Part shown: positions 1-58,291 of the stretch, one piece after another | Numbering within the stretch: position 1 is the stretch's first letter | How the letters are laid out: each line of letters starts with the position of its first letter | NCBI GenBank assembly: GCA_029953675.1 | Contig: JAMWBK010000001.1 | Coordinates: forward strand, 3,224,001 to 3,288,000 | Source: Rhodosorus marinus CCMP1338 | Taxonomy: Eukaryota > Plantae > Rhodophyta | Direction of reading: 5' to 3' | DNA length: 64,000 nucleotides | Made by a program: the position numbers and the translations under genes | The notes under the pieces: generated by a model | Told to the model about the DNA's origin: nothing | Seen by the model: only the letters and a program-made list of their open reading frames with translations | Databases searched by the model: none

Positions 1-3000
1 CTTGTACCAACTATACCCAATGCCAACGATACGAGCCTGTCAAGAACGCGTCCAACTCGGAGAACATCGCTGGAGACCTCTCGAATGCATGCAGCCGCTA
101 CCAGGAGGGACACACCATCACTCACATCCGAGCCCATGTGATCATCCCTCGTAAGCAAGGCGTGAATAGCTTCCAGAACTTGCAAGAGAACAGTAGACGG
201 CACTGCGCGAGTGAGACCAAGAACAAACCCATCCGCTACTGCCGGCAGAATGCCGCCGAGCTCCTCGCTCTTCTCGACAATCACTTCCAATGCTTGAGGA
301 AAAATAATATCACCAAACTCTTTGGTTCTCCAGGCCTGTATGCTTGCCGCGACTGCCCAGGTCACGCCTTCAACGTTCTTGTACAGTTTCGCCCGCACAA
401 GCTTGAGACCATGAAGGAGAGCGATTCACAGCAATTAGCAAAATGACCTTCAAGGATTTTCATCGTATAGATGAAGGTCTCAGTCTGCTTACCAGATCGA
501 TTGTACCCACGAACGAATCAAAATTAACTGCCGGTGCGTTTCCAAGTTCGACATTATTGTGTTCTACTGCGTGCACAGTACTGTCCGCTCTGCTCTGCTC
601 TGACCTCCGAAACAGTTTTGATTGGGTTCGGACAGATCCTTCACCTCGTAAGCTTCTCCGAGACATCGATCCACGCAGCTCCTTCTTTCCAATCCCTTTC
701 CCGGACAGTATCTTCCTTTGGCGCTGGCTATTCCTGTTTCGGCGGAACAGGCTCCCTGCCGAGGCTGCTGAAGCATCCGAAGTACGGGAGTCCCGAGTGG
801 ACTCCGTTCTCGCTGAGCCACGAGCGGAATCCGGGACAGAGTCCCTGGATACATCTCCGGTTTCATCCGAGATAAACGACTCCGCCATCAAGGACGAATC
901 TCCAATGGGTACCGAGCGCTCCGAGTCCCTCATCGCGTCATGATCCTGGCAACCAACAAACCTGGATGAGACCTCGGACGCAGAACCTCCAATGCTACAA
1001 GATGGCAACAAACTTCAAGAAGCATCAATCAACTACAACGGCTGAATCTCAACAATCGCTTACCACAGAGGCATCTAGCGTAGTATCTTTCTGGTCGTTC
1101 TCTCCGATTTCCGCCTCCTCATCGGCCGGTGGTCCTCCGTTTTCCCCAACTCCAGGAGGCATGTCATCTGTTTCGTTAATCTCTTTCATTTCGTCGTCCA
1201 GGTTAATCACGATCTAGACGAGGCGGAGACCATATACACATCGCTCTGATGAGATGCCGGTGTCAGTCAGGCAGAAACACACAAGCAGTCACCTACCGTC
1301 TCATAGTTGTATATCCCGTCGTCCTCATCCTCAAAAATAGTCCTGTTTTGATTTGCGTTCTTCATCTTGTCCACAGCAGAGGCGCGTGAGAGGTAATGCT
1401 CCCATACCGTCTGCGCCTTGGCCTGTCCAATACGAGCCACTGCAAGTCCATAGAGCTTCTGCTCATTTGGCTCAGAACTGTCAGCAAGGTACTCAACGCA
1501 TGCCGTTCGAAATGAGGCTGCGTAGGGGCTCGGTCTGTTCAATGGCACAATTCACGAAGTTCAGCAAAAGTCAAAGCCATCACCTGCAAGGCGAGGGTTG
1601 CTCCGTACTTGATCAACGGGGCGAAGACAGCAGCTAGGAACGCGACTCCGCTTGAGCAGTCCTCAGTCTTGTTGACGATCACCTCGATCGCCTTTTCGAT
1701 GGTCTCCTCGTCTGCAATACCAGCCAAGTGAGATCGTACCAATTCTGCAGCGCAGAAGCAGCTCTCGTTCTTCAGCGTTTCCCAATTGGATTTTCTCAAT
1801 AGTAGTCGGACAGATTTGCCAATCTTTTCATCCTTAACACGGCACCTGAGGGGACACGGCGCAAACCCTTTGTGTTCAGTCGTTCAACCGAGATGACCTA
1901 GTCAAACGTGGCAGATGAATGCCGCCGACTGTCGAGCTTTGAAGCAAATGGTGGATCAGCAGCGTACCTCAAAAGTAAGGCTGTAAACATTGCCATCGAG
2001 ATCGTCAGGCTGTCCGCATGCTCCATGTCCAACTTGAGTTCCTTGTCAGTCATTGCAATGTACTCCTGGAGCTTTCCAATAACGTAATTGACTCCATCGG
2101 TGCCAGCAAAGATGGAGCAAGACTGAACCAGCGTCAAGACCTAGATTGAAATCCCAAGATGATCAGAGGCATTTCAAAAAAAAGGAAAAAAGCAGCAACG
2201 TGCTTGTCATACCTCTTTCCGAATGGGGCCACCTCTGCTACCGTACAGAAAGCCTACCTTCATGGCCAGTTTCGATAGTTCCCTGACATCTTCCATGATA
2301 TCGGCATCAACTTTGTATAAGTTGGTGAAGAAAGCCTCAACCGCATAAGTCAGAATGCGATAAATAGTAAGTCTGTTAGAATAGCCAGCGTCGATGTATT
2401 GCTTCAGAGTGGCAACGACAATTTCCACTGTTGGACTCTGCGTTTTCAAGTTGAGAGATTCTGTCTTGAAGTGTTCAGCTCCCACACCGCTTTTCGCCTG
2501 CCGCACTCGTTCATCGCCTTCAATCTCAGCCTCGAGCTTGGCCCAGGCCTGTTTCCTCCAGGTACTCTGGTCCTTCCCGATTTTTGGCTTCAGTTCCTTG
2601 GGAATCGCCTGTTCCTTCAGGGTCGCCCTCGCCACGTAGCCCATGGTCTTCATCGTGAAGTCATCGTTGCCCTCTTCTAGCTGTTGGCTTTCTTCTTCTT
2701 CTTCGTCGATGTTGATGACCATATCTGGAGCGGTAAGATCAACTGCCCCTGAGGCGTTGAAGTCAACTGCAGTCGTTTTCAAAAGCACACAGTTGGTCTT
2801 CAGTACCACTCCCAAAACGAAGAACTCCTAGCAAAGATATGCGAGCTAATTACCATTTTCAGCATCCGCCTCAGCGGCTGCTGAAGGCTTGGCGTCTTCA
2901 TGAACACCGTCTCCTATTTCTGGCTCGGGAACGTCGTCGCTGCATGAGTTGGCAAAAGAAGCAGAGAAACACCTGGTCAGATCCGTGGAAGAGAAAATAA

Positions 3001-3094
3001 GCATCGGAAGTCCTCCCTTGCAAGCAAGCATGTCTCACATTTCACCGACGTCCATCTCGCCGTCTTTCTTTTTCCGATTGTAAATTCCCTTCAT
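1..3094 (-). CDS. Multi-exon hypothetical protein, probably largely alpha-helical, with SIM-like motifs; 3' end runs off the window
   Basis: ATG at 3094 (MKGIYNRKKKDGEMDVGE) is followed by a GTGAGA donor. Track ORFs 2846-3031, 2207-2815, 1898-2137, 1539-1799, 1267-1548 and 460-1011 are same-strand segments separated by GT..AG gaps. A further open minus frame (NVEGVTWAVAASIQAW...LDRLVSLALGIVGT) continues to position 1. A C/A-rich leader at 3100-3450 resembles those of other minus-strand genes. No family recognised. Confidence 0.7.
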
Positions 3095-4611
3095 AGCGGC
3101 CGATGCTTCTACGCAGAAGCGATCGAGTCACAACCAAATCCTCCCCTCAAAACTGGAACCCTTACTCTTCCAGAGCTGCTAAAGCACCCCGGAAAATACA
3201 AAACCCTGGACCCATCTGCACATGTACACAAAACCAGAATCCCTCAAGCCCACACTTTACAGGTACGCTCTACCTTTTAACTAGACAAAACAAGAGCCCT
3301 CAACCAGTAGCACAGTCCCCAGGCAGCACAAGATCAAGGCGAAGATGTCGTCATTGAAGCTAAAAATGCCAACCCACACTCGCACAAACAAAAACCCCAA
3401 GATCATCAGAATCGACACCATTCCAAACACCTTTCTCGCACCGCCTACTCAAAACATGTTTTTAATTGAATTTTATTAACACACTGTATCAGCGCAGAAA
3501 TCCGCCATAAGTTGGTGTCCACATCCAATATTGAATAAAAATAGAATATTTATCTATACGACCAAAAACTATTTATGTTCAAGCTAAATTCAAACTCATT
3601 ATAGAATCTGATTGGAGGGAGCTTGCCTTGGACCTGATTATTTAGTATTTCAACGGGTCTGATGGTAGTATGATATAGGGGGTGTTTCCATATTGGTGAG
3701 ATTCTCAATAACATTGATTATTTTTCGATATATGAAATGGTTGCGATTAGGCAGGTGAAGCTTGGTGATAAACCAAGGGGGTAGGAGATGAGGAATGCTG
3801 GCGGGCTTGTCAGCCTGATATACACGTGATGTGGCTTTATATTGTATATTCCAATCCAAATTAAACGTTTTAACCGTATGATGTTCCTGACACTTGAGTG
3901 AAAACCGGGTTTAACCAAGGAGACCCGATCCGCGGGAGAGCAGAGGAAGCTTGGGGATTCCATGACCTGAAGTCTGAGTTTCAATTAGCCTCGACTCCAA
4001 TGAGAAACGCAGCAATTTTGTCACTCAACGCCATTTTGAAAGTGTGGTATTGACTGAGGCGAGTGATAGAGTCTACTATGATCTATAGTCCCTAGTCGCA
4101 AAAGACTTGTTCACTGGCTGTGAGAGCGTCTTGCTCCACTTCGTGTACATGATGTATATGCTACATGTCTTGCGGCTCGATGAAGCGCCTGAAGACAAAA
4201 CAAGGACCTATACCAACAAAGTCGCCTAAAAGATGCTCTACTGCGTGAAGGAATAAATCGTGTGCAAGCTTGCCGTCCGACTGCAAAACACCTAGCGCTG
4301 ACGGGAGGACCCGTGTCTCGGTAAAATCCCAGAGAACGCACACCAAGCGATGTCGGGTCCATTCATTGATGGTTCCACAATATCAGACACCCCTGTCTAT
4401 TTGTGTCACGACTAAACATTGCCTTGGGAACCGCTCTACGCGACCCCATGTAGGTCGTCATTGCTTCCATTCCATTTAGATTCTACCAGTTGATCAACTA
4501 CGCTATGGACAAACAATTCTGTGCACAGTGAATTTTCGTTGAGTTTCGGGGCTGTGACCGTTCAGAGATTGCAAGCCCGCTTAGGGCCCACAAATGATCG
4601 TTTTCATTCTG

Positions 4612-4707
4612 TCCATCAGCGTGTTGTGAACTCTTGTTCACAACACGCTGATGGATAAATCATCTGAAGACTTCTGGCCTGTTCAGCACGAGCCAGAAGT
4701 CTTCAGA
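4612..4707. repeat. Two adjacent perfect inverted repeats (20-bp stem/4-nt loop and 16-bp stem/13-nt loop)
   Basis: 4612-4631 TCCATCAGCGTGTTGTGAAC is the exact reverse complement of 4636-4655. 4663-4678 TCTGAAGACTTCTGGC is the exact reverse complement of 4692-4707. The two hairpins are 7 nt apart. Confidence 0.95.
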
Positions 4708-6821
4708 CGCTGCGGTTTGGTGGAGCCTACGCTCTCCTCGGCCAGCAAATTCAGACTATGTTGCTAGGGTGCAGGCTACGGTTCAGCTTTCTATCCTGCA
4801 CATACCTTGCACAGGGAGTTAGAAGTTCTCTAGACATTGCGTTCATACACAAGCACACGTCGAATACAGGTTATGACCGTGTTCATACTCAAAACCCCCA
4901 AAAGAACCTCTCTGCAGCTCCACCGGAACAAGGCCTGTCGGACCAGAAACCCCTTAAGAAAGTTAACTGCTTCCGACGATGAATAAGATGTAGCATTTCT
5001 CTAGCAGAGTGGCAGCATGTGCAAGCCGCCGTATACCCAGGCTAGGATTATCTGGCAGTAATCGTTCATCGTATTTTGTGAGCCTCCCCAACCGGTGGGG
5101 TTGCCTGGGTGCGGGTCTGAACCCCTTTCGATCCACCCTATTGAAATGATTGAGCTCCTATTTCCAGTCCAAAAATCAATTCTAGAGCCAATCAATGCTC
5201 GTTACAGCAATTAATGATTGAATATCTGTATTTTAAAAGTAATTAGATTTCCTTTTTAGGTAGCAATGATTCATAATACCACACTAGTTGATTAGAATGC
5301 CGTTGGCGTTGTTCGAAACTCATAGCCCTTCCTAGATTTGAGATTTTCTGCATGAAGAACGATCAATAGAGAATATTTATGATCCGAGGTCTGAACCGAA
5401 ATAGGATGTTCTTGAATAGCCTTGCTTTTTCATTCAAAAATTCTATTTCTCGTTCGAGGCCGCCCGCATTCCCAGAGATCGTGAGGTCAAGAACTCCGGG
5501 GGGGAGGGGGGGTGTAGATGCTCAGAATTTCATAGACGCTTCCTAAAAGCGCTGAAAACGAGGATATTTGGAAAATAGAAATACCCCCTTTGGAAATCGA
5601 AAAGGAATTTGGTTCCCGCCTTTAGTCACTTTTTCCGAAAACCGGCTCCGCCTGTTTTTTGTACTAATTTTCAGCTTGACAATCACAAACGATGGGTTTC
5701 ATCGAGAGCTGAAGTGGACTGGGGGAATGTCCAAACTCCCGTATCTAAGGATATTGTATACTCGAATAAAATCCAGCCTTCGCGTTTCTTCATATCCCCT
5801 CCACGGGGGTTAGGAATGCTCAAAAAAACAGGGCCGTCTTTTATGCAGAATTTTGAGACTCCTCGTGAGCCAGACAAAAAAGAATTGTCCAAGGTCAATG
5901 ATTTCGAACCGGGGTAAACCCAAAAAAATCATGTTGGATTTTTATGTTTATTAATAGAAAATTACTTAGCTAAGTGTGCAAAACGGAGCATATAGTCTTG
6001 AGGGGGTAAAATGATCTTCTTTAAAATTGCGACAGGTAACGCCAAACCGCGATTTACACGGAAAGTATTGATTTTTCAATAGTTGCGTTTTTGGACCTTC
6101 TGTTGAACTTTTCCATTAGTAGCCGCGGTTCCATAAAGAGTGTGGAAGGGGTGTCCGGTGTGAGAAATGTACCCCCTCAAATTGGAACTCGAACTTAAAA
6201 ACATGAAAGATAAGGGGGGTCGTTATTTTGATCTATTGGATTTAGTTTCTGTTTAATAGTTCTTTTTTATCCTACAAGTAGGAAAATGTGAAAAGACACA
6301 GGGGGGTTGGAAGAGGTCTTTCTGTTGGAGTTGGGTGGGAAGTACTACAGAAGATTATATCGTGGTTTTCTGGTTTGGGGGGGGTGAGGGTTGTGAAGTG
6401 GGAAAGCAGTGTGGGGGAGTGTCAGTTAAGATGAATAAGTACGAGAGGACTAGAAGATGTCGGATTGATGGGGGCGGGGGTGGAGTGTGAAGGTTGCTTC
6501 TGATCGAGGGCAAACTTTTTTTTGACTGGGGTGAAGGCAGCGCGCGAGATTGTTGAGCTTGGGTGGGAGACCAGGAAAGGCTTTTTGGTTGTGGCGTGTT
6601 TGTTTGTGTCTTCTTTTTTTTGGGTGGAGAATCTGATGATGGTGCTTGGTGTAGGCAACAAAGCGAGAGGGAGATGGGGATTTGAATTGGGGAAGCTTTT
6701 CTTGTCGCGAAGCGTTTTTTGAGTGGTTTGGGAGGTTAGTAAGTGGACGATTCTGAAAGGAACGCGCTCGGCGTTACTTGGAGTTGGGGGGAAAGGTTGA
6801 GATCGGGGATATCCCTGAGCA

Positions 6822-8475
6822 ATGGAAGAGGCTGTACGGAGAATCGTCGGCCCCAGAAATCGCGAGGATGTCAAAGAAATGAATTTAGACAATCGGTGCA
6901 GAGCCGAAAGGTTCGAGGGCTTGAACGGCCTCGCGAATTTGGAAGTGCTCTCCGCGATCGGTATTGGTCTTGTTTCGTTCGAGGGAGTGCCAACATTGTC
7001 GAAGCTTAGGGAACTCGAGATAAGCGATAATCGATTAACTGGCGGATTAGATGCGCTGCAGCGAGTACCAAACGTTGAAGTTCTTAAGCTCGGAGGGAAC
7101 CAGATCACAACTATCGAAGCCCTCGAGCCGCTCTCGGCTCTGAAGAAGCTGCGCAACCTCGATCTAATAGAGAACCCGGTGACCACCGTTCCAAATTATC
7201 GAGAGCGACTTTTCAAATTGATCGAATCCCTCAACGTGCTCGACGGGGTTGACGAAAACGGCAACGATGAGGACGAGGACGAGGACGAAGATGAGGACGA
7301 GGGCGAGGAGTTCGATGAGGGGGTCTTGAACAAGCCTTATGGCCGAATCGGAAATGCTGAAGACGCAGATGAAGGTGACGATGATGCCGACGGCGGCGAT
7401 GAGGAGCTCGATGAGGAAGTGGATGACGAGGAAGAAGTAGACGACGATGAAAACGACGATGACGTGGAGGGGGATGTCGAGGAGGAGGTTGGAGAAGTGG
7501 ATGAAGGAGACGAAGACGATGAAGATGAGGAAGGGGATGACGAGGACGGCGAAGAGGACGAGGTTGAGGAAGAAGAGGAGGGACCCACCGACGACGCTGA
7601 GGCAGAAATACAAATCGAAGACGACGATGGGGAAGATGAGGAAGAATTTGAAGGGAAGCAGACGGACGATTTGGATGCCGACGATGATGAAGATGACGAC
7701 GATGATGTTGTTGACCAGCAAGGACTTGACTCTGGTGTTGGTGAGGGGGTCGTCGAGGGAGAAGATTTTGAAGACGATGACGAAGATGGAGATGAAGAGC
7801 TATCTATAGAAGTTGAAGAAACCAATGACATTACTGGAAACGATTTTGGAAACGAGGACGAAGATGATTTCGGAGGGCACATTCCACCCGGCGAAACTGA
7901 GGACTTCGAGGAAGACGACGACGAAGAAGGAGAAGACGATGCTGAGAACTTTGGGGATGGGGGCGAAGAAGAGGAAGATGAAGAGGAAGATGAAGAGGAT
8001 GGTCCCGGGTTGGCATACTTGCAAGGTCCCATCGAAGATGATGTGAGTACCGAAAAGAAAAAGTTTACGCTGGATTTTCCCTGATCGCCTGGGTTGGATG
8101 TTGATCCAAGAGCGTTTTGCTGAATCCCTATGTGTTAGAAATTGAGTGCCACTGGAGCGCCACCTTCGGTTCTTTTGCTCACGCCACCCTCCTTCTTTTC
8201 TCGTTTTTCTGCAGATGTCTGATGACGCAGAAGACTTTCAACCAGTGTATGAGGAAGTGGACGAAGAGATTGAAGACGATGGAGACGAACCACCGGCGGA
8301 AAAACCTCCAATGAAAAGGAAGCGTGAAGAGGACGACGATGATGAGGAGGACGACGATGACGTCGTTGAAGTCGACGGCGACAATCCAATGCCCGAATCG
8401 AAGGCGTCGAAAACTACTAACGATGCGGGAAACGAGGTAGCTCAACAAGAAGGTGAGAGCCAGAAGGACGTGTAG
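6822..8475 (+). CDS. ANP32: Acidic leucine-rich nuclear phosphoprotein 32 family (ANP32), 2 exons
   Basis: N-terminal LRRs (LRELEISDNRLTGGLDAL, LDLIENPV, LNVLDG) are followed by a long D/E tract. A phase-0 intron at 8043-8214 (GTGAGT..TGCAG) joins the 8215-8475 exon, which carries the KRKR NLS. The 8146-8475 ORF is therefore the last exon, not a separate gene. Confidence 0.92.
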
Positions 8476-9170
8476 GCACCAACGACTTTACCAGACCTTG
8501 GTAATTGACAACCTCGACCACGGCATAGTGACTCTCGCAACTTACAAGCGGCAACGAGGATATATGGGGAGACGTGAACGGTTCATGTGATGCCCACGAG
8601 GACAGAGGGAGACCCTCTCACCCTCTCCCGCAGCACGATGCGCATGATATGGGAATGGTGATTTCCGTACGAAGCAGTCCATTGTGAACCGTGGGAGATG
8701 TTCGCTTAGCTCGCTGACGGCACAGACCTTTGAGTTCGTTGTACAGAATTTTTCTAGAACGTGCCCTGAAGACCGAGCTCAATAGGGACGCATGCTCATG
8801 ACCGGTTTCCACTGTTCTCACTTTTCCAGTGTATGCTTCTACCTGGAAGTCGTGAGAACCGTTCTCACGCGTGCTGAGTCTCCATTGTACGGAGATAGAA
8901 GCGTGTGATTTTATGACCTGTTCGCTTTGCGCGTGCCTCGGCAATGCACACGACAGCTTTTTTTGGTTCAGGTGTTTGGACATATCATCAATAGAGGAAT
9001 GCTATTCGCAATTCTGTTTTGGTTGTTGTTTGGTGTAATATAGCGAGAGAAAGACATCTGCTGCTCCGGAGTATGGAGTTCTCGACTGCAAGAAGTCAAT
9101 GGTTAACCACTAAAATGAATTTCAAAAAGAAGTCACGGCACTTTTGGGCAGGTGCATGAAGTGCGAAGCG

Positions 9171-10211
9171 TCACTGGTTCTTGAGGAACTCTTCAACCTG
9201 GGTTCGAGTGGGTTGGGCATCCATTGCGCCCTTGGCTGTCGTGGTTAAAGCTCCTGTGGCACAGGCAAACTGCAGCATCTTTTCGATTTCTCCCGTCTTC
9301 AGCTGGGAAACGTTGGGTAGATAAGATTGTTGCGCAAGTGCTTCTGAGAGAAATCCAGCGACAAAAGCGTCGCCAGCCCCTGTAGTGTCAACAGCTTTCA
9401 CGGCAAACCCCCCGACGACTCCAGTCTTTATACCGCCCTCAGACCTGAACGCAAAGCTCGCACCTTTTGGACCCGCTGTGACTAGGACGCCCGTCACGTC
9501 ATCGCCGAAGGCCTGAAGGACCTCCTCTGGTTTGCTCAGACCACGTTCTGGTGAAATTCCCAGCAAAAACTTGACCTCATCATCAGATATCTTTACAATA
9601 TCCGCGCAACTGTTGACATAGTGCAAAATTTCCGCTTTGGCGTCTGCCTCACTATTCTCCCAAAAGACAGGACGCCAGTTGACGTCAACAAGCGTGGACA
9701 GACCCTGAGATTTGGCGCCTTCGAGTGATGATCTCACGGCTTTGTTTGAGGTTTCAAACGCAAGTGCCAACGTTCCCGTCACTACAACGGTGGAAACCTC
9801 AGAGAGGTCCACAGAAGGCCTGATGTACACGTCTGCAAACTCCGTATTGACCCCGCCATCAAACCCCTCAAATACGCGGTCGCCATCGGGCTTGAGCCCT
9901 ACCAGCACCCTCCTCGTTGGGTGTCCCTCAAGTTTCTGAATGAGCGTTGTTTCAACACCAGCTTGGTCCAGCGATTCGATCAACTTGTGCCCATCCTCAT
10001 CGTCACCTACGGCCCCGAAAAGACATGAACTATTCCCAAGCTTGACTAATGCTGAACAAACGTTGGCGGGAGCTCCCCCGGGCAAACAGCCGCCCCCTAT
10101 GACGCAGTCGAACAAGAGCTCCCCAACAGCAACCACTTCAGCATCAGAGCAGACCAATCTCCTGCTCCCGGACTTTAGCGATACCGGAGATACATTCAAG
10201 AAATTCAGCAT
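9171..10211 (-). CDS. pfkB-family carbohydrate kinase (fructokinase-like), probable plastid transit peptide, intronless
   Basis: GELLFD, PGGAPANV, DVNWRPVFW and VDTTGAGDAF pfkB motifs. N-terminus MLNFLNVSPVSLKSGSRRLVCS is transit-peptide-like. Confidence 0.92.
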   Translation of the reverse strand: MLNFLNVSPVSLKSGSRRLVCSDAEVVAVGELLFDCVIGGGCLPGGAPANVCSALVKLGNSSCLFGAVGDDEDGHKLIESLDQAGVETTLIQKLEGHPTRRVLVGLKPDGDRVFEGFDGGVNTEFADVYIRPSVDLSEVSTVVVTGTLALAFETSNKAVRSSLEGAKSQGLSTLVDVNWRPVFWENSEADAKAEILHYVNSCADIVKISDDEVKFLLGISPERGLSKPEEVLQAFGDDVTGVLVTAGPKGASFAFRSEGGIKTGVVGGFAVKAVDTTGAGDAFVAGFLSEALAQQSYLPNVSQLKTGEIEKMLQFACATGALTTTAKGAMDAQPTRTQVEEFLKNQ

Positions 10212-11361
10212 CTTGGTGAACTATGAAGAGTATAGATGCCCACAGACTATCATCATATGGGTGGAACGCTCACCATCCCAATCCGCATCAGCACCGCAAA
10301 CACCACCCCACTATCCATTTTGGACTGTTTCCCGATACCGCAGCCGATCTAATCCTCCAGATACAGATACATTAAGAAATTCAAATATTTCAATAGATCC
10401 TTGTATGATCTAAAATAACAGAAAAACAAATATCGTCGGAAAGAGTTGAGGCGTCCATTTTGATGAGTGAATCGATCAAATTAGGGCCTTTTGGGGGATG
10501 CAGTATCCGTAGGGTCTTTGGCAATGCAGAGCTGCCTATTTTCTTAGCCGGAGAGAGGAATGGATAGATAATGGCTGATCCTAAGATTAATTCATGCGCA
10601 ATTCGCCATTCGACTGAAAGTTTGTTGTTTAGTGGTAGTGTCGGTCCTACTTTTCCGACGCCGCACAAGACGTCAGTTGTACTCGTCGGTTAACTGTTGC
10701 TCCACAACACTCCTTGGTGGGCTTGACGCTTGAGTCCGTCGTCTCAGTCCCAACTGTTACTTCGTCGCTATTTGTGAATGACCTTAGTGAACTAGCACAT
10801 ATCATGGCGCCGAAAAACTATCCCAAGCTCTGGGGAAATATCGCACCTCCTCCGCGGAAGGTGCAGGCAGGCGCCTGCAAATGACCCTTTACGTGGAAGG
10901 TTCGGAATCCCTAAAACGCAAGACTTCCTTCGGAGCCGCTTCGAAAACCATACGTGGGAATGGTTTTATGTCGCTCCTCTGGGCCTCCTTTCCGGGTCGC
11001 TTATGGGGTACGAGGAGAGCACCGATTTTTGCACAGCTTCTGCAAAGTATCAACTGAAACACTGGGGCCCAGAACCAACTTGGAGCGTTTCTCTGCAGTC
11101 AGAAATCGTCCAAGCTCTTTCTTTCAGATTCCACACGGTGCGGCTGTGGGTAAGTACTCCCTGCTCTGAGGATAATACTTAAAAATTAAATGACCCCTTG
11201 TTTTGTACAGTTGTACAAATTAGGACTTCATTTTTTTTGGATTTAGAATCTACCCATTTGGTCTGAGGAGGAGAAGGTTGGTGGGCGTTCTCTTGGTGAA
11301 GGTGGCATGTATTCTGACTGAATTCTAGGAGACGGAGGTATTTTTAGATGATAGATTTAGA

Positions 11362-12695
11362 ATGGAAACGAGGTCATCGATCTCTTTTATGAAGCGGTTG
11401 GTAGCCCTGGACCAGAAATGTCGTGTGTTTCTGCGTGCGAACGCACGGCAGATCACGATTGCCGAGGAAGGGCTTCGCGGCCTTGCACTGTTAGCGCCTG
11501 GTGGTGACTCTGAGCTCCGAGCTGAGATTGCGAATACTCTTCTGGGTCTTCTGGGTGTTTATCGCGATAGCGCGGGAGAAGGCGAACCGCGCCAGCGAAT
11601 GGTAGGTTTATTGTAAGAACCAGCCTGGCTTGGGTTGTTTAGGCGTTGCTCAGAACTCAGACGGAGCCTCCCTTTGAGTTGCGTAGGCCCCAGTTGTTCT
11701 CCTCTCTATTCTCCGGACGTCTCAAGTGCTCATGGAGTTTGGTGCGGAGAGGTCACTCGGTAGGAGAAAAAAATTCTTGGTTCTATGGTTTACAGAAATC
11801 GCAAAGGCAGCACTTCGCCTGATACTTCTGTCGTGGAAGAACGGATCTGAACCCCTGGAGGACGCGAATGAGCAGCTACAACTTGTGCCTCCTGCTCACA
11901 CGTGTCAGAAGGTTCAAGAACTTGATTCGCAAACTGGAGCTCGGAGCGGCAGAAAGATTGTCACCCTAGCGGCCGTCCAAAAAGAAACCGACTTTACCAA
12001 CCTGTTCGAGAAGGTAAGGATTCCTCGTTTTGCCACAAGTTTGTGCATGGAGTGCACCCCAAAGGTCCTCAGGTCAGTCAAGCATTAACGCTAAGCACTG
12101 GGTTGCAACCACGACCACCAGATTTACGACCAACAAACTTCAAAGTCATTTGGAGGACTTTTGGAGGAACCCTGTGAGGCCTGTAGGATCGCTGAACAGT
12201 CCAACGGCTATGGAACGTCGAGAGGACAGCGAGAAGTTACAATTGAAAATGGGAGACGCGGACTCACGAGAAACGTAATAGCAGAGCTCCTGCACATACT
12301 CAGGCCTGTTATTTATCTCAGTCTGGTGCGGATCTACGGATGGAAATCATGGAAACCATGGTGAGCTCAGTCCACAAAATTTTCAAGCAGAGCAGCCGCC
12401 GAAGGGGCTTTGGCTGAAGACCTCCTCTCCCTGATCGTCAAGGCTGCTGTCTCTAGTGGCTGACCTCTGCTCCATAAAGATGATGTCCAACGTTCGCCGG
12501 GAGAAAGCGAGACGGGTTCAGAATCTTCTATTCTACCTAGTGAGGAGTCCATTCTATGATAATATCAGCGGAGCCCTGATAGGAGCGATCGCCAAGGTCC
12601 TTGGCAGGCTGCCACTTATCGGAGATCCCATAACTTCCGGGGCGGAGGTCGCTGACAAGCTCCAAAAGTACTACTTCTACATATCTGCCTCCTAA
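11362..12695 (+). CDS. PEX16: Peroxisomal membrane protein PEX16 (multi-exon)
   Basis: Segments EIAKAALRLILL, IAELLHILRPVIYLSLVRIYGWKSWKPW and RRVQNLLFYLVRSPFYD...LQKYYFYISAS match the PEX16 pattern; GT-AG introns lie between them. Confidence 0.88.
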
Positions 12696-12930: not shown

Positions 12931-14998
12931 CTAATCGCAATCCGCTTTCGTTCCATCGTCCGCGCCGTCTTTCTTGTAAGTTCGCTTTCGCTTAAGCTTT
13001 CTCCACTGCCAATCGCGACTAGCTTGGAAAACAATTGTCTCCACGACATGGCTTAGGTCTGGGTCCCCACCGTCTAACTCTATCTTTGCTTCGTGGATGA
13101 CAAAGTCCCTCTTGTTTTGGCCATCTTCAAAAATGTTTCTAGATGGAAAAGTGGACATCAACATTAGCGACGCCAGTCCTCAAGAACAAGGGAGCTATGT
13201 GGCGGTGGAGTATTTCTTACTTCGATCCGTTGAGGAAATGTTCAAGTTCCTGCCGATCTGTAGTACTCAGCGCGTTCTGATCTGGCCCGAGAATTTGATC
13301 TACATCAATCTCAGGGGCACTCTGAAAATCGGAAGACAAGAAACACACGAAAAAAGTCCTGTTAGCTCGAATTTGCCATGAATCATGCTCCCACTCTCGG
13401 CTGCGGTACCTCGGCGGATGGTTCCTCGACCTGCGGCTCCTTCTCCGCATCAGTAGTTTTGTCATCCCTCGCGTCGGTAGTGTTTTCATCCTTAGCTTCG
13501 GTAGTGTTTTCATCATCCTTAGCTTCGGTAGTGTTTTCATCCTTAGCGTTGGTAGTGTTTGCACTACTAGTTTCCGCCGATTTGTCATTCCTTTGTAGTT
13601 TCCGCGTCCGACCCGCCAACGTTCGAGTACCCTGAGAGGAATACAGTTCCTTGCGCTAAGAGCGATTGAAGAAATGACCAAGTTGACGATGTAGGGGCGG
13701 CGGGGGCTTTTCCACTGGGCTGTGGCGTTTGTGCTTACCGATGACTTTCGTTTGAGCTGTCGATCATTCTCATCGTTTTCAACATCTTGAACCTTCGGTG
13801 TTCGAGCTCCCTTACTAGGGCCGTCAAGTTCTTTCGCGTCCTTTTTGCTATCACTGGCCCTACTGGAGAGCTTGGAACTTTTCCTATAAAGAAGGAGCAC
13901 ATTTCAAAAGGTCACGAGGCACACATTGTTAGGCTAGCAACCTGGTAGTGAGCATCACGGCCACCGCAAAAGTGAATGATTCGGGGGTCTTGACCAGACA
14001 GGTGGAGCAAGCCGTTCTAGCAAATATTAGATGTGATTGCTAACCTTTTCAACATCTCCTGCTCCTTCTTCTCTTCACGCTCTCGCCGTCTTTCCTCCAT
14101 CTCATGCCTCCTCTTCTCAGCTTGCAGTTCCTTTTCTTTCTTCTTCTCCGCGTCCCTTATCAAGGTTGCGCCTAGACTGTCGGGATCCATTGCCATGTTG
14201 TCGTCCTCCATGAGCATCTTTGGTCTTTTGGCACTGGCACTCGTCAACTTGCTCTTGAAGCTGTTTGACCTCGCGAGGGAGCCTTTCCTGTGAACATTAT
14301 CCACTCTCTGCAGACCTTCCTTCTTATGCAAGGAATCCAGCTTGGGCAGCTTGGAAAGCGGCTTCAAAGATGGCCTCCGCATCATCGTGTCGGGGCTTGG
14401 CCTACTTGAAACAAACGGGCTGCGCTGTTGAGTAGACTCTTGAATACGCAGGAGGTCTGATCTCCGGTATTCTGGTCGAATCTTAAAATCCTGCTCCTCC
14501 GCTGGAACTTCGACGGCCTTCTTGTTAATCGTAGATACATATTTGTCCGTCAGCGGGTGCACAGGTTTGGACGAACTTGCAATCTGCAACTCATTCTGCG
14601 GAATCAACAACCCGTTAGCAGAGAGCTCGATCTTCGAAGGTCAGAATAGAGAATTGGGTAGAAATTCTCACCAACTTATTCAGGGAGGTCTTTATTTCCG
14701 GGCCAATGGAACCTTCGACTGACAGAGATTCCGCTACAGCGCACTCCCACTTACCCCAGTCATTGAAGCTCTTAAAATTGTCCAAGAGCTCCGGACCCTT
14801 CTCTGGGCTCTGGGACAAGCCTATTGCGATCAAGGCTCTCGATCGAGCGGTCACTTGCTTCATCTTATGAACTGAGTCCAATCTATCTTCAGCAAGCTTG
14901 TGCCGTACCTCCTCAAGCCGCTTCCCATCCCCTAATATCCCAGGTACAGACCAAGAAAGGGATATCAAATCCCCCCAAGCACCTCCATCTCGCACCAT
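12931..14998 (-). CDS. NELFA: Negative elongation factor A (NELF-A/WHSC2)-like protein (multi-exon)
   Basis: Colinear resemblance to NELF-A blocks as I recall them: DWGKWECAVAESL, VHPLTDKYVSTINKKAV...DFKIRPEYRRSDLLR, RPKMLMEDD, and the C-terminal NALSTTDRQELEHFLNGSK...VVETIVFQASRDWQWRKLKRKR. The last two introns (GTGGGA..TTTCAG, GTAAGA..ATCTAG) keep the frame. Recognised by eye only. Confidence 0.65.
13451..13562. repeat. Coding tandem repeat of 24-27 bp units (about 4.5 copies) encoding (D)ENTTEAKD in the NELF-A-like linker
   Basis: Repeated GGTAGTGTTTTCATC(ATC)CTTAGCTTC on the plus strand; the minus frame reads AKDENTTEAKDDENTTEAKDENTTDARDDKTTD. Confidence 0.9.
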
Positions 14999-17631
14999 GG
15001 CTCTAGCAATCCCTCAGTACTCACCGAAAACCAGATTCGAAGTCGAGCAAAAGAACGACCACAAGCACGAAAAACCCCTACGTCCAAACATACACCTTGT
15101 GCATCTCCACGAAGTCAAGACATCCTTGGATGATGAATATCCTATAACCCCAAACCCGAGGTCCTATTAGGTGCTAGCCTACGTATTTGCAATGTTTCAC
15201 CTCAGCTCTCCCTCCACACCCGACCAGCACATACCTCCATTTCAGAACATAAAGAGCGCCATTATATTATGAGCCCGCCTTACGATTCGTTTTTTGATCC
15301 CAAACAGCGAACAAGCAAAAAAATCCGCTATAACAACAGCATCTTCCTGGCCAAAAACAGAGGACTCAAACATGACCAATTTGCCAACAAGTCCGGAACC
15401 CCACCCCCCCCGCCCTACCCCTACCCCCCTCTCCAAATGAGCTCTGCTTTTTCTAAGTTTTCTTACATTCTTTCCTCCCCATTTTCAAGGATTCTCTTAG
15501 GTGCATACCAGAAGAATTCTAGGGAGGGGAGAGATCTAAGCTGAACCGTTTTTTTGAATAACGTAATTTTCTGCCCATTTTTGGATTCTGAGTTGGTTAG
15601 CTGAACAAGACGTAGCTGTCATCTCAGATCTTTGATCTACTATGGGAATGATGAGAGGACAGCTCTCTAGTGGAGCCCATGCGGACATGTGGTAAAATAG
15701 CTGTCCGCATTTAGTTGTTATGGATAGGGGTGCTCCTACTCACGGATTGGTTTGCCTTGTGCAGAGCCTGTAAGAAGCTCAGTGCTACTGTCCTAACATT
15801 GCTTCGGCGATGCGCGACCTGCATCAAGCGCGTCCAGACAACGCGTTCGTCTGTAGAAACAGGCGAGTCTGGAGCTACTTGAAGTGGACACTTCACAACT
15901 GATATGGCTGAGCAGCAGTGACGGCAATGAACGGGATGGAACTAAGCTTGTGGCTGGTAAACATCTTCTAGATAGGCAGAAATACTGTTCCAGTAGTGGG
16001 GTGATGCCGAGTAAACGCTGCGGTTACCTCCAACTCGTTGTTCACCGCTGCCTGTTCAGTTGGGAAGTCTAGGATTGCTCAGCCCAGTGGCTGAATGCTA
16101 TATCACGCAGCCTCAGGTTTCGAAGAAAATGAGGCGGCTGTTTCTAAGAGTAGGCTCTGGCGGAAGTAGCTTCAAGCCAGGAACTGTATCTCCCATGGGA
16201 ACGTGGGACTCTGATGGTTGTAGGACTAGATCAACTGTTACCTTTGGTGCTCTGCCACTGCCGCGGGTAGCAGTTGGAATCGGAAATAAAGCTGTACGTG
16301 ACCTTCAGATAACATCCACACGTTGTGCACTCTGAAGAAAGTACTGAGCGATCACTTGTCTCCGGGCACAATGGCAATTCATTCACGGAAAAGCAGTATG
16401 ATCAGCGCTGCCATGACATAGCCTGGCGGCTCCAGTGTGAATTGTCCTCAGCTTCTGCAAACGACCCGGAGAATCAACGCTGACGACATCCTGGCATGCT
16501 CTTGGTCAACGCAGAGAGCAGCTGAAACGAACAGCATGACACTATCTCATGACTGCTGAGAAACCTAGAAATCAAAGAACGTTTCTGGGTGACACGAAAA
16601 AGTCACCAGCTTGCCACACACCAAGCGCCCTACCTGGCAGGAAGGTATCTCAAGCAATCGACAAGAAAGTGTCAATCGACACCGCCCACACCAAAAGACC
16701 ATTCAAAAAAAAAAAAAAGATCAAAAATATATTCAACTTCCAAATTATGCAGCAACCCTTCATGAAGAACAGAATACCAGGATATGTTTGTGACATATTC
16801 ATGATTTGAATTTTTGTTTTCCTTTATTTATACCAAATCAGACAGTTTAAGACCAATTCTTACATGTGATTACAGTAGTGTAAATGAATTACTAAAGAAA
16901 AAATAGAATCTGACGAACTGAGCAAATAGATTGATACGCTCAACACTTTAAGTAGCAAACAAAAAATGTGGCTGCCCCAGAAAATGGGTTTATTTTTGTT
17001 AAAATATTGAATTTCGGCTTGTTTCGTGCGGGGGGGGGTCCACAATAGTCATATGACTTTTTGCGAAACTCCTCCGCTCAGAGAGTTTGGGAAGGAGGAT
17101 GGTGGAAGGTGTTTGACGTGCAGGGCCGAAGGAGTTTGAATGCACGCTAGAGACAACGTTTTCTGAGAGCATCGACAAAGGTCATGAAGATACAGTGAAA
17201 GGGAGCAGGTACAAAGGCTTGTATACGAATGACCTAGGCTGAATTCAGTCTTTTCTGGCTCTAGTTCTCTTGGTTTCCGAACCCCGCGCGCTGCCTTGAG
17301 GTTGCAGGGATAGCTGTTTGGGAAGTTGTGTGAATGGTAGACTAAGGAGAGATTCTTGGTCAACTTTGAGTTGTGTTCTAACGTGGTGGGCCCCAGGGGG
17401 AATTGGAGCAGCTTTCGAAGCCGATGGTAGTGGAGATCCGAGCTCCAGGGCCCGGGTGGGGGGGGGGGAGGGAGTGAGGCGGGCTTGGGGCAGCCCGCAT
17501 ATGTTAGACAGTATTGCTCAGCCCCGGTGGTAGTCATGCGGAAAGGTTGAAATTTAACATCCCGATAGTGAACTTATTAGGCGATTCAGAGGGAGAGTTG
17601 AAGACGGAGGGTTTATCTAGATTTAAGCATT

Positions 17632-20135
17632 ATGGGTATCAAGTGGGTCGAGTTTATGCGTCAAATCTTCACTGGGAATATGAAAAATGAGAGCGAAGTG
17701 GCAACATCAGAAAAGGATGATAATATAGACGCCTATTTGAGGGGAAAAGCTGAGGATGTCAAAGAAGGGAGGCTCGATATCGGTGCGCTAATGCTTGAGC
17801 TGTACGATGTGCCTCAGTACCCAAACGATGAGACAATAGGCGCACTAGTAGCTGTCATGACAACTCGTAACCGCCAAAAGGTATCTGCTCACTGTACCCA
17901 GCCCGCATGAGTTGAGACTCGCATTGCTAAAGCTTGCATCGGATCTTTGGTTTGTTTTTGCTCAGTCTCTTTTGAAGCTGCTAGTTGGTCCGAAAGAAGA
18001 GTTGACCGGGACTGGGCTTAGTGAGGAGTACCAGATTATGCATGTTATATCCTTCACTTACTCAATAATGCCGCAATTCAGGCGAAACTTGCTCGTTGAC
18101 AAAGACCTCTGTTCAATCCTCTTCGATTATTTTGAAACAAAAAGCCAGCTTGGAACGAAACAGACGACGTATGTCACGGACGTGCTATTGGCGATGCTGA
18201 GGGAACACTTTGTAAGTAGCGGTGTCGATCCATTGCGAGTGGCTCTACTTTTATGCTAACGAGTGGGTTCTGGGAACTATGACAATGCGAAGGATCTCAT
18301 ACTTCCTACGCTGGTCAAATTTCCAACATTTATCGTCAGCTTGTTGAGGCATGTCTCTCATTTCGGAGTGCAAGAGTTTTTGATGCAACTGGTGACACTG
18401 CAAGGAGTTGAGGACACATCAGACCTGAAAAGGGATCGCATAGGGGCCCTCTTTCTAATTCTGGAAACGTCTCAGTTTTTCCGTGCAGTGCACAGGCGAA
18501 TAGTGGATTCAATTAAGTGTTATGGAACTGATGTCCTTGCAAACATGTCCTTGGAGAGTTTAGTGCGGATTGAGGACGGGCTTTACAGTATGGACCTTAG
18601 GCTTCCCGTCGGGTGCCATTCCATTGAAGAAGCCAGTAGGATCAATCCTTTGTTGCACCATGAGCATGTTTCGGAGCTCCTGGAGCTTTCAAAGGGCCAA
18701 CTAGAGGTGAGCGTTAGTGACCGGTGCCAGCTGACATGGGTGTCTACTCTTTGGTTGCTAACTTTTTGTTCCCGTTTCTACGTAGACGAGCGAGGAACCT
18801 CTGATACTTACCCTGAATCAGGTTATGGAGATATCGGTCAAAACTTTTATCATGAAGAGAAGCTTAACCGAAGCTGGAGCCAAACCTTTCCCCCCCAACC
18901 ACCCCTTAGATTCAAGCGGATTGGAGAAAACGATGGTGAATTTTACGCCTGATCTGCTTCATTTGCTGACTGGTGCGAGGGACAAATCGCTTCAAGCGCG
19001 TGAGCGTGGTGAGCCGCAGCCACGTTTTGGAAGGCTCCGTATTAAGATATTGGAGTACTTTGCAACCTGTTTCAAAACTTTCACCAAGGTCAGTGTGCGT
19101 CTATGGAATCGTCTTGGGACCTCTCTGGGAATGAGGAATAAGTCGTTTCTATGCAATGTGCAGTTGCGCGGGGATTTCTCCGTGCAGCTTGCTCAGTTTC
19201 CCACGACATCTGTTTACCAACGTTGCAGGATTCCAGGATGGCTTTGTATAAGATGAAAGTTGCGGGGGTTCTGTTCAGTCTCATTGAAGCATATCCAGCA
19301 AACACCATTCTTCATCAGTTGGTCGCATCATCGATGGAAGCCTCTGTATCTCCGCAGCGAAAATCTGGGCTCAAAGCGTGGTTGAAGGAGTTTTCTACGC
19401 TGCGACGGATCCTGGATGTTTGGAAGGAGGAGGGCGATCGGGTGAGGAAAACGCTCCTGCAGGTTGTCAGTGGCATTTGTCAATTCAGCACACTCACCGG
19501 TTACCCTCCAAATCATTGATTGTCTCCAGTTCTTCGAGGATGCTTTGGTACCTACGTATCTGAGCATCTACGTACAGATGGCATTGTATGTGAAAAAAGT
19601 GATAGAGTGTCCGGGGGTGGACAAAAACAGGCTCCTGGGGGATGAACTCGAAAAAGATTTTGACAAGTTCTGTGTAGAGGTGCTCGCCAAGGTGGTTGAA
19701 ATGAGGGCAAAACCCGAAGGAACTCCGGAGTATATACAAAACCCGCGTGCAGATGCGCTTTTCAGAAGGACCTCAACTGCACCCTTGTTTCGCCCATCGC
19801 CACCTGCTGGCAGCGAAGTGGCGTCCACGCGTGAAGTACCTGGCATCGACGAGGAGCCCAAGAAGGTTGAGAGTACGGGAGAAGCAAACCCACTTGCGCT
19901 CAATGTGGAAGAAACGTCGACCGTCAACGGGAAAGCAGACCCCGCACTTTGGCCGCCCAAAGTGGACTCTCTGGATATCACCATGCTAGTGAAGCCGTCA
20001 GACGGAACTTCTGGACGACCTCCGAAGGGACCCTCGAGGAGTCCAACTAGCGTACCCCAGGGAGTTGTACCTCGAGAGCCTCGAAAAGTAGTCTCCAATG
20101 ACCTGAATAGCTCGACGAGTAAGGCCAACACGTGA
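17632..20135 (+). CDS. PPP6R: SIT4-associated protein / PP6 regulatory subunit (SAPS domain), multi-exon
   Basis: Exonic segments LMLELYDVPQYPNDE, LLRHVSHFGVQEFLMQLV, QPRFGRLRIKILEYFA, GVLFSLIEAYPANTILHQLV and a Pro/Ser-rich tail fit the SAPS architecture. Confidence 0.75.
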
Positions 20136-50739: not shown

Positions 50740-50778
50740 TCTCAGTGAGATGGGCGTTTTGGCCCATCTCACTAGAGA
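50740..50778. repeat. Intergenic inverted repeat (12-bp perfect stem, 16 bp with one bulge)
   Basis: 50744-50755 AGTGAGATGGGC / loop GTTTTG / 50762-50773 GCCCATCTCACT, with flanking TCTC/GAGA. Confidence 0.85.
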
Positions 50779-56817: not shown

Positions 56818-58291
56818 CTGCTCCGTACACTTACAAGACTCTCCCGCCTCCTCCTACTACAAGAGCAAACAGAATCCCCCAATTCCTCCCCTTCACTACC
56901 AGAAAACAACCTGCCCTTCCTGCCCGAAACCTCCTTCCCTAAGATCCATATCTCAAATGTGACGACCCGATGGCAAATGCTCATCATCTTCAATCTCCGA
57001 ATTTCACGAAAAACGGCCAAACGTCGATTCCGAACGAAGAAACCTCCACCTGCTTCATTTTACATTTCATGAATAAAAAACAAACGCCTTTTGCGTTTAC
57101 ACCAATTAAAAAACGACACATGACCCTCACGAGAAGGTATTTCTGACGACGGACCGATTAATACGAGTTGAATTTTTTCAGGTAAACTTTTTCGATTATC
57201 AGTTAAAACAGTAAAAGCATCGTATTATTTGTTGGAGGATAGCGGGGATGAGGCGGGGACAATGCCCGCCTTACTCACAACGGGGTTCTGCGCTGGTTGA
57301 GGAGGCCGTTTGGTTGACTATGTAAGTGTTCCTGGATGAGCAGTATGGTGCTTTCTCTTTCTCCTGGTGACTACATGTTTAACCCTTTTCCCCCTCTATC
57401 CCTTCCGTGGTGAGGATGGAAGAGGTCAGGACTAATTCTGGTTCTGGCTGGGAATAGCTCGCGAAAGCAACCGATGGCTCTAAGGACGTCATCCCTCAGG
57501 CCAAAGCTTCGTAACAGAAAATCGCCTTCAACTTGCTTATCTGTAGCTCCGTCCTGTGCTTCACGTATTCAACAACAAAATTGTTCTAAACCTGATCAGA
57601 GCGCAGACTGGATCTGGAGTACAGAGCTTCGGTTTGAAGAGAAAACGAAGTCGGATCGAAGCTCAAAACTGCTGGAATACGGGAAGATCCAGATAAATCT
57701 GGGGGCCAGCTGCGGTCCATGTCAGCGGCGGGCTTCTTTTCCCCTCCAACCTCACAATCTCGTTTAGCTCCCACTTTAATGACTCCTGAATTCCAGCCGC
57801 TCTATTACATGAAACCCCTTCTCTGTAGAGTTTTATCAGATGTGACAGACCAGCTGCTACAAAAGCTGGCGGGACCGCTTCATTTTTTTATCACCTGTGG
57901 TCCGTCCACATGCACAACTGCCAATCAAATCAACCTCAACGTACCATCTCAGCTAGATTCATAAACAAGCTCCACACCGGTACAGCTGAGCTGGACACAA
58001 GGCCTCGAACTCTGGACCGAAGAAGAAGAGAACCCCTTCCCGCATGCTGGACTTCACAACATCACTCCTCCCCCGCATGTAAGAAACTGTTAGCTCCGGG
58101 TGACGACGGGATTTCAATAATAATGGTGACGGTGACGGCTCGTCGCGGTTGCTTCACTTGCCTGGATCCGACGCGAATGGCATTCTTATGAGGTTTAGAA
58201 CATTTATTTTGTTGAATACGTGAAGCACAGGACGGAGCTACAGATAAGCAAGTTGAAGGCTATTTTCCGTTACGAAGCTTTGGCCTGAAGG

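Follow-up and report, generated by a model that had tools for sequence, protein, structure and literature searches.

Snap-back replication leaves inserts that are reverse complements of the adjacent flank in polymerase-theta scars (PMC5068794), and the primer-repeat concept that describes how such synthesis is started has been developed for SD-MMEJ (PMC5728401). Most polymerase-theta scars in C. elegans are not of the snap-back type, the mean insert is ~10 bp and approximately one error is made per 30 bp (PMC5068794). Perfect reverse-complement repeats are also formed by template switching, in which the repeat is produced by one replication-linked event (Loytynoja & Goldman 2017, PMC5453318; Monttinen & Loytynoja 2022, PMC8794818; 10.1101/2023.04.19.537475). 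Hairpins with short stems are also found among shRNA-like and pre-miR-451-like precursors (PMC5737282).

Rhodosorus marinus is a unicellular red alga whose nuclear genome has been described (PMC10250338). The genome is 31 Mb in size with a GC content of 49%, and 15% of it consists of repeats, mostly CRE/SLACS LINEs (PMC10250338). Its RepeatMasker table assigns 0.03% to DNA transposons, 0 to rolling-circle elements (Helitrons) and 4% to unclassified repeats, and its BRAKER annotation comprises protein-coding genes only. Public read sets consist of RNA-seq (SRR19576337), Illumina (SRR16874263) and Nanopore (SRR19576338) data. The window, i.e., the whole 64-kb stretch of DNA analysed here, belongs to nuclear contig JAMWBK010000001.1 of assembly GCA_029953675.1 (R. 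marinus CCMP1338), and window position p corresponds to contig position 3,224,000 + p. This placement follows from the pfkB ORF of the window, whose exact product is on record for the contig. Two perfect hairpins lie side by side in this window, in an arrangement that may be a natural scar of the snap-back or template-switch kind.

Results

The hairpin-bearing divergent gap

A first-pass annotation, made from the sequence of the window, had placed the hairpins in a divergent intergenic region of 3.7 kb; the NCBI gene calls set this gap at 3,727 bp. The genes to which the text refers are:

start codon at 3094, minus strand: gene encoding 2450 aa (NCBI gene calls)
6822-8475, plus strand: ANP32-like LRR gene (NCBI gene calls)
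9171-10211, minus strand: pfkB ORF
12931-14998, minus strand: annotated gene encoding 525 aa

The hairpins are situated midway in the gap, 1.5-2.1 kb from either start codon, and the gap is the largest divergent one among those that can be delimited from the gene calls. At 48-50%, the GC content of the hairpin region does not depart from the nuclear mean. We considered whether a 'GC island' at 3850-5150 might be an inserted block or hidden gene and rejected this, as its GC content is the genome mean of 49% and the other divergent gaps are built alike. A tandem repeat with units of 24/51 nt (TCATCC(C/T)TAGCGTCGGTAGTGTTT...) was found at 13453-13560, inside the gene encoding 525 aa, and indicates a repeated peptide motif in that gene.

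The first-pass annotation had also pointed to a G/T-rich, leader-like stretch at about 3660-3830 as a hint of a plus-strand transcript crossing the hairpins. The stretch itself is real, with a GC skew of +0.47 over 3600-3800, ~800 nt from the hairpins, but it is not specific to such a transcript. A similar G/T-rich stretch occurs beside the left-hand gene leader in the gaps at 10211-11362 and 14998-17632; it is therefore a generic promoter-region feature that says little about transcription across the hairpins. The three gaps have a common layout, in which a C-rich leader of the left gene is followed by a short G-rich stretch, non-coding DNA of mean GC content, an AT-rich stretch and the G-rich leader of the right gene. 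Strongly G-rich sense-strand leaders, 400-600 nt long, were observed upstream of each start codon in these gaps (3095-6821, 10212-11361 and 14999-17631), with GC skew reaching +0.75 at 6300-6500, and AT-rich patches of 27-35% GC are present in all three. This shared composition may be a mark of bidirectional promoters in R. marinus.

A homologue search with pfkB returned a 91%-identical MMETSP protein and a 3.6-kb transcript from a related strain (L020, 3623 nt; JGI sample 3300017118). The spliced transcript aligns to window positions 10292-8215 and 8042-6582, which confirms an LRR-gene intron of 172 nt at 8043-8214, and places the start of the LRR mRNA near 6520, ~1.9 kb from the hairpins. 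An upstream exon of the LRR mRNA near the hairpins was rejected, since the 60 nt at the end of L020 that fail to align are no more than a G/T-rich leader that has diverged. Nucleotide identity between L020 and the genome is 94% in the LRR CDS, 90% in the pfkB CDS and 88% in the UTRs. L020 covers both of the convergent genes, pfkB and ANP32-like, which are separated by 696 nt (8476-9170), and its span suggests overlapping 3' UTRs or read-through over this convergent gap. The search with the ANP32-like ORF (6822-8084) missed both its own product and the 94%-identical orthologue that L020 reveals, and negatives from that search are unreliable; the likely cause is an acidic low-complexity tail that filled the 8000-candidate word filter.

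Geometry of the tandem hairpins

The features of the hairpin locus are:

4610..4657, no strand: hairpin 1 including its extension (sequence, RNA fold, DNA folding energy)
4612-4631: 5' arm of hairpin 1, TCCATCAGCGTGTTGTGAAC, 20 nt
4632-4635: loop of hairpin 1, TCTT
4636-4655: 3' arm of hairpin 1, 20 nt, 100% complementary to the 5' arm
4656..4662: spacer (junction or filler) between the two inner arms, TAAATCA, 7 nt
4663..4707, no strand: hairpin 2 (sequence, RNA fold, DNA folding energy)
4663-4678: 5' arm of hairpin 2, TCTGAAGACTTCTGGC, 16 nt
4679-4691: loop of hairpin 2, CTGTTCAGCACGA, 13 nt
4692-4707: 3' arm of hairpin 2, 16 nt, 100% complementary to the 5' arm
4635..4640: TGTTCA direct repeat, copy 1, at the loop/3'-arm boundary of hairpin 1
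4680..4685: TGTTCA direct repeat, copy 2, 45 nt downstream of copy 1 and within the hairpin 2 loop

The geometry agreed exactly with that first described: a perfect 20-bp stem with a 4-nt loop (4612-4655; 22 bp if one G-U pair is allowed) and, 7 nt further on, a perfect 16-bp stem with a 13-nt loop (4663-4707). In the RNA fold, hairpin 1 grows to 22 pairs through a G-U pair (4611 G/4656 T) and the pair 4610 T/4657 A. Within the perfect arms all 36 of 36 pairs are Watson-Crick, with no mismatches and no G-U pairs. The two palindromes are unrelated in sequence and lie 7 nt apart, so that their inner arms face each other across the junction. The TGTTCA..CACG-like text that had been noticed in both was located at 4635-4640 with 4644-4647 and at 4680-4685 with 4687-4690, and this motif is all that the two palindromes share. 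A match of at least 6 nt between the two specific regions that hold the TGTTCA copies has a chance probability of ~0.03, and in an unbiased census the 5-6-mer repeats in 4580-4740 are at chance level; the TGTTCA repeat is therefore supportive of a scar, but not decisive.

Statistics and folding

The two hairpins are the longest two genuine hairpins in the 64-kb window. Stems of this length had been judged very unlikely to arise by chance, and chance was excluded by 300 block shuffles of the window: two stems of at least 14 bp were observed against a mean of 0.00, and four of at least 11 bp against 0.26. Analytically, ~4e-4 stems of at least 16 bp with a 3-30-nt loop are expected in 64 kb. The RNA folding z-score of 4560-4760 (201 nt) was -9.7 on the plus strand and -10.3 on the minus strand, and the DNA folding energies were -25.4 kcal/mol for hairpin 1 and -17.8 kcal/mol for hairpin 2. 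For the flanks, 148 nt on each side, folding was not superior to that of shuffled sequence (z from +0.2 to +1.3 over both strands), and a larger structured RNA is not supported.

Short perfect inverted repeats are mildly enriched throughout the window: 30 of at least 8 bp were counted where shuffles gave 19.7, and 10 of at least 9 bp where shuffles gave 4.8. This mild enrichment fits a repeat-generating mutational process. Two further perfect hairpins exceed expectation, one with a 12-bp stem and a 6-nt loop at 50744-50773 (AGTGAGATGGGC gttttg GCCCATCTCACT) and the other with an 11-bp stem and a 10-nt loop at 40173-40204. The only long repeat in the window is an inverted one of 142 nt (57459-57600 and 58184-58325), with arms that are 94% complementary and 583 nt apart. 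The ORFs between and over its arms look non-coding, save one of 134 aa that starts inside the right arm. Candidate identities for the repeat are a long hairpin-RNA locus and an element of the fold-back or TIR-bearing kind.

Searches for RNA families, coding sequence and further copies

No match at the Rfam gathering score was found in the whole window. In a permissive Rfam scan of 3000-6900 the best match was mir-8338, which reached 31.5 bits on one strand and 30.1 bits on the other where the gathering score is 80; any perfect hairpin would score ~31 bits on both strands in this way. The suggestion of a structured ncRNA or small-RNA precursor thus met, as far as known families are concerned, with sub-threshold generic hairpin matches alone. 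Scans for tRNAs and tandem repeats found nothing near the hairpins.

As had been stated in the first-pass annotation, no ORF or recognisable transposon in the window explains the hairpins. ORFs over 4000-5300 are short and random-looking, and a six-frame Pfam scan of 3800-5299 found no domain and no transposase, reverse-transcriptase, Rep or organelle-gene remnant. A composite query of all stop-to-stop frames over 4250-5050 had no match among 5.8 billion predicted proteins. For non-coding transcripts this negative is weak, because short spurious ORFs were evidently uncalled in the transcriptome sample. An exact-product look-up returned no record for three local ORFs or for the cyclin ORF.

The end of a mobile element had been offered as another origin; a multi-copy element found no support, with no other copy in the window or in the collections searched. 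Neither arm occurs elsewhere in the window at up to three mismatches, and self-BLAST of the 64 kb revealed no dispersed copy of the hairpins and hardly any dispersed repeat of other kinds. In viral contigs, single-arm matches at chance level but no palindromes were seen, and no match was found in metagenome contigs, in prokaryote genomes or, by BLASTN, in plasmids and phages. 'Single copy' is used here for the 64-kb window and these viral, metagenome, prokaryote, plasmid and phage collections.

Signatures of known element classes were also sought. A Helitron 3' end carries a hairpin of 16-20 bp located 10-12 nt before a CTRR terminus, which is followed by a host T. Sequence inspection showed this signature to be absent from both strands: the only CTRR near a hairpin end on the plus strand is CTGA (4664-4667), which lies 8 nt beyond hairpin 1 and has A as its next base, and on the minus strand a CTAA lies 27 nt from the hairpin and is followed by G. 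MITEs and other TIR transposons are recognised by multiple copies scattered over the genome, each bearing terminal inverted repeats and flanked by target-site duplications. The units here are 44-45 nt long with loops of 4 and 13 nt, and no other copy was found in the 64-kb window or in public collections.

Three further candidates were rejected on inspection of the sequence. An intrinsic terminator or organellar 3' stem-loop (NUPT) would not fit, as neither hairpin is followed by a T-run on either strand and organelle-gene remnants are lacking. For the replication origin of a CRESS-DNA virus or geminivirus (NANTATTAC-like nonanucleotide), the loops read TCTT and CTGTTCAGCACGA instead, and no Rep domain was found in six frames. 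P-nucleotide footprints of hairpin-forming transposases would be loop-less palindromes, and the hairpins here have loops. A canonical miRNA precursor was defined by an imperfect stem for a 21-22-nt duplex, a basal stem (~35 bp in animals; an extended fold-back in plants) and a loop of at least ~10 nt, and its small-RNA reads would be precisely cut duplexes with 2-nt 3' overhangs; here hairpin 1 has a stem of 20-22 bp and a loop of 4 nt, hairpin 2 a stem of 16 bp and a loop of 13 nt, and the flanks are unstructured.

Discussion

A DNA-level scar as the preferred explanation

The best explanation for these observations is that one recent DNA-level event copied the flanks as their reverse complement, and that the hairpins would be the functionless scar of that event, young and still perfect in intergenic DNA that tolerates it, and not an evolved RNA or protein-binding element; we give this a probability of about one half. 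Among the origins listed in the first-pass annotation, 'footprint' came nearest, in the sense of a DNA-level scar, although break repair or template switching is preferred here to a transposon as its source. We infer the event, the status of the inner arms as the derived ones, the making of both in one event and the polymerase from the product alone. Two properties of the product point in this direction. All of the pairs are Watson-Crick, which argues for DNA copying, as selection on an RNA fold would tolerate wobble. The palindromes are adjacent and face each other, the layout to be expected when both ends of a single break copy the flank beside them. Independent events would almost never coincide. 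Perfect pairing would be equally expected from strong purifying selection or from correction within the hairpin.

The most economical version of the event is snap-back, synthesis-dependent end joining of the polymerase-theta type, for which two features may be delimited:

4627..4640: putative pre-existing snap-back primer, TGAAC (4627-4631), TCTT, GTTCA (4636-4640), proposed from the sequence
4641..4685: putative inserted block of 45 nt, with proposed boundaries

A double-strand break at or near TGTTCA would have been repaired inaccurately. The left 3' end (...GTGAACTCTTGTTCA) would have folded back by means of the inverted microhomology TGAAC/GTTCA within it and been extended by 15 nt to give hairpin 1, so that 4641-4655 (CAACACGCTGATGGA), the 15 nt after the primer, would be newly copied from 4612-4626. 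The right 3' end, on the bottom strand, would also have snapped back and copied 16 nt to form the inner arm of hairpin 2. Joining of the two extended ends over the 7-nt filler would then have left TGTTCA duplicated. A double template switch during replication could give the same product. As a side effect, the scar may form a cruciform or, in the event of transcription, an RNA fold.

Several observations bear on this scheme. A 5-bp inverted repeat, TGAAC/GTTCA with a 4-nt loop, is located exactly at the tip of hairpin 1. The sequence at 4641-4655 is the reverse complement of 4612-4626, and that at 4663-4678 is the reverse complement of 4692-4707, both at 100%; the putative inserts therefore reproduce adjacent flank within a few tens of nucleotides, as snap-back inserts do. 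The 45-nt block reads, in order, as 15 nt of left-flank reverse complement, TAAATCA, 16 nt of right-flank reverse complement, C and the second TGTTCA. When it is removed the remaining sequence (...GTGTTGTGAACTCTTGTTCAGCACGAGCCAGAAGTCTTCAGA...) is ordinary and contains only a weak quasi-palindrome, with a folding energy of -18.9 as compared with -69.8 kcal/mol, and this shorter sequence is a plausible ancestral state. An insert-free allele in relatives would be expected to read ...GTGAACTCTTGTTCAGCACGAGCCAGAAG... / ...GTGAACTCTTGTTCAGCACGAGCC.... Against the scar, the primer repeat at the tip of hairpin 2 is 1-2 nt at most, and hairpin 2 would need priming on those 1-2 nt. A single event that copied 15-16 nt twice without error would also be at the long, clean end of the range in C. 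elegans (PMC5068794).

Alternative explanations

The best-surviving alternative, which we regard as unlikely, is that the tandem short hairpins form a functional hairpin RNA in an unannotated non-coding transcript, giving rise to small RNAs (shRNA-like or miR-451-like) or serving as stability or processing signals. The folds are very stable on either strand, the G-rich, leader-like stretch at 3600-3800 lies upstream on the plus strand, and an ncRNA would have stayed unannotated, as BRAKER calls protein-coding genes only. MiRNAs have been reported from other red algae (PMC12026948, PMC4981961). However, canonical precursors prefer a stem of ~35 bp and a loop of at least 10 nt, for which the present stems lack the length and the loop the size, the flanks add no lower stem, and the G-U pairs or bulges typical of evolved precursors are missing. 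The Rfam score (31 bits against 80, on both strands) is that of any perfect hairpin, and there is no visible target, as a search of the window that allowed up to three mismatches gave no other match to either arm. The G-rich stretch is generic to the divergent gaps of the window, and the hairpins fall outside the LRR mRNA, given that the mRNA of the related strain starts near 6520.

A functional hairpin RNA may be compatible with birth by template switching, and template-switch hairpins are a documented source of new miRNAs. It is improbable that the locus is a newborn, lineage-specific tandem-hairpin RNA locus, made by one-step templated inverted synthesis and transcribed from the divergent promoter region to yield small RNAs. 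A literature search found no small-RNA loci in stylonematophycean red algae. We know of no small-RNA library from R. marinus.

It is also rather unlikely that the hairpins are a fragment from elsewhere, be it a NUMT from the non-coding part of a mitochondrial minicircle (records OK643888-OK643898, ON716284 and OP146131) or the end or remnant of a mobile element or unclassified repeat with many further copies in the genome. Of 14 red algae compared, R. marinus shows the largest fraction of NUMTs, which are mostly non-coding (PMC10250338). Unclassified repeats make up 4% of its genome, and within the species the copy search covered the 64-kb window out of 31 Mb. The window itself, however, contains no second copy and almost no dispersed repeats, and no transposase, reverse-transcriptase or organelle-gene remnant in six frames. 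A mobile element is further disfavoured by the genomic share of DNA transposons (0.03%) and Helitrons (0%), by the absence of the Helitron 3' signature on both strands and by the length of the units, which at 44-45 nt are too short for MITEs. In the case of the minicircles, the dot plots in the genome paper show inverted repeats only in those of R. pilicola, and the GC content of 48-50% is that of the nuclear mean.

A functional element at the DNA level, in which cruciform-forming palindromes act as a protein-binding, recombination, replication-origin or chromatin-boundary signal, is quite improbable. Perfect repeats with a 4-nt loop extrude readily, the folding energies (-25.4 and -17.8 kcal/mol) are favourable, and the position is central in the largest delimitable divergent gap. 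Yet the two palindromes have TGTTCA..CACG alone in common, the other divergent gaps in the window hold no copies, and at 1.5-2.1 kb from either start codon the hairpins do not lie in a core promoter. An assembly or polishing artefact is very improbable: the assembly is Nanopore-based (NextDenovo), but it was polished in three Pilon rounds with 100-bp Illumina reads, each hairpin fits inside one such read, and fold-back reads give kilobase-scale inversions, not distinct palindromes of 20 bp and 16 bp with different loops.

Age and implications

UTR substitutions between the genome and L020 amount to 12.2%, or ~6% per lineage, and the probability that 72 unconstrained paired bases would stay unchanged at ~6% is ~0.01. 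This divergence, taken with the perfect pairing, implies that the hairpins are either younger than the split of the two strains or actively maintained. The scar and functional hypotheses therefore predict opposite states at the orthologous site in relatives.

If the preferred reading as a repair or copying scar is true, the locus would be an unusually clean natural case of a chromosome break at which each end served as template for its own repair. Red algae would then be subject to mutagenesis by snap-back or template switching, a process able to supply two ready-made hairpins of 16-20 bp in a single step; such hairpins are thought to be raw material for new hairpin RNAs. The result is modest and illustrative, concerning a known sort of mutational product and not a new biological system, and it would gain greater weight if the hairpins were transcribed and processed, or conserved with compensatory changes. 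It also offers a calibration for genome scanning, in that long Watson-Crick-only palindromes with facing inner arms and unstructured flanks would point to a mutational origin.

Comparison with known systems

Helitron 3' hairpins and MITE TIRs resemble the locus in having a palindrome of 16-20 bp within non-coding DNA. The locus differs from them in that it has no CTRR at 10-12 nt, no internal sequence between the 'TIRs' and no second copy in the window. Among shRNA-like and pre-miR-451-like precursors (PMC5737282), the closest likeness is that of hairpin 1, whose stem of ~20 bp and 4-nt loop resemble a minimal substrate. Unlike those precursors, the locus has no basal stem or flanking structure and no target in the window, and the 13-nt loop of the second hairpin gives it a different geometry.

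Template-switch hairpins (PMC5453318, PMC8794818, 10.1101/2023.04.19.537475) are closer. Like the putative scar, they occur in non-coding DNA, are flawless at first and develop out of sequence that is non-repetitive or quasi-palindromic. One switch makes one inverted copy, whereas the locus has two, with templates upstream and downstream, so a double switch or two events would be needed.

Snap-back inserts of SD-MMEJ and polymerase-theta repair (Yu & McVey 2010, PMC2943611; Khodaverdian 2017, PMC5728401; van Schendel 2016, PMC5068794) share with the locus an insert that is the exact reverse complement of the adjacent flank. Further putative likenesses to SD-MMEJ inserts are the inverted microhomology at the tip of hairpin 1 (TGAAC/GTTCA), the proposed lengthening of a pre-existing inverted repeat and the combination of a short filler with microhomology at the junction. 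The R. marinus locus would differ in that both ends of the break snapped back, and its copies, with 15 and 16 nt, exceed the reported mean of ~10 bp and are cleaner. Whereas the SD-MMEJ papers deal with scars of experimental break repair and mutagenesis, the hairpins described here would have formed naturally, in the germ line of a red alga.
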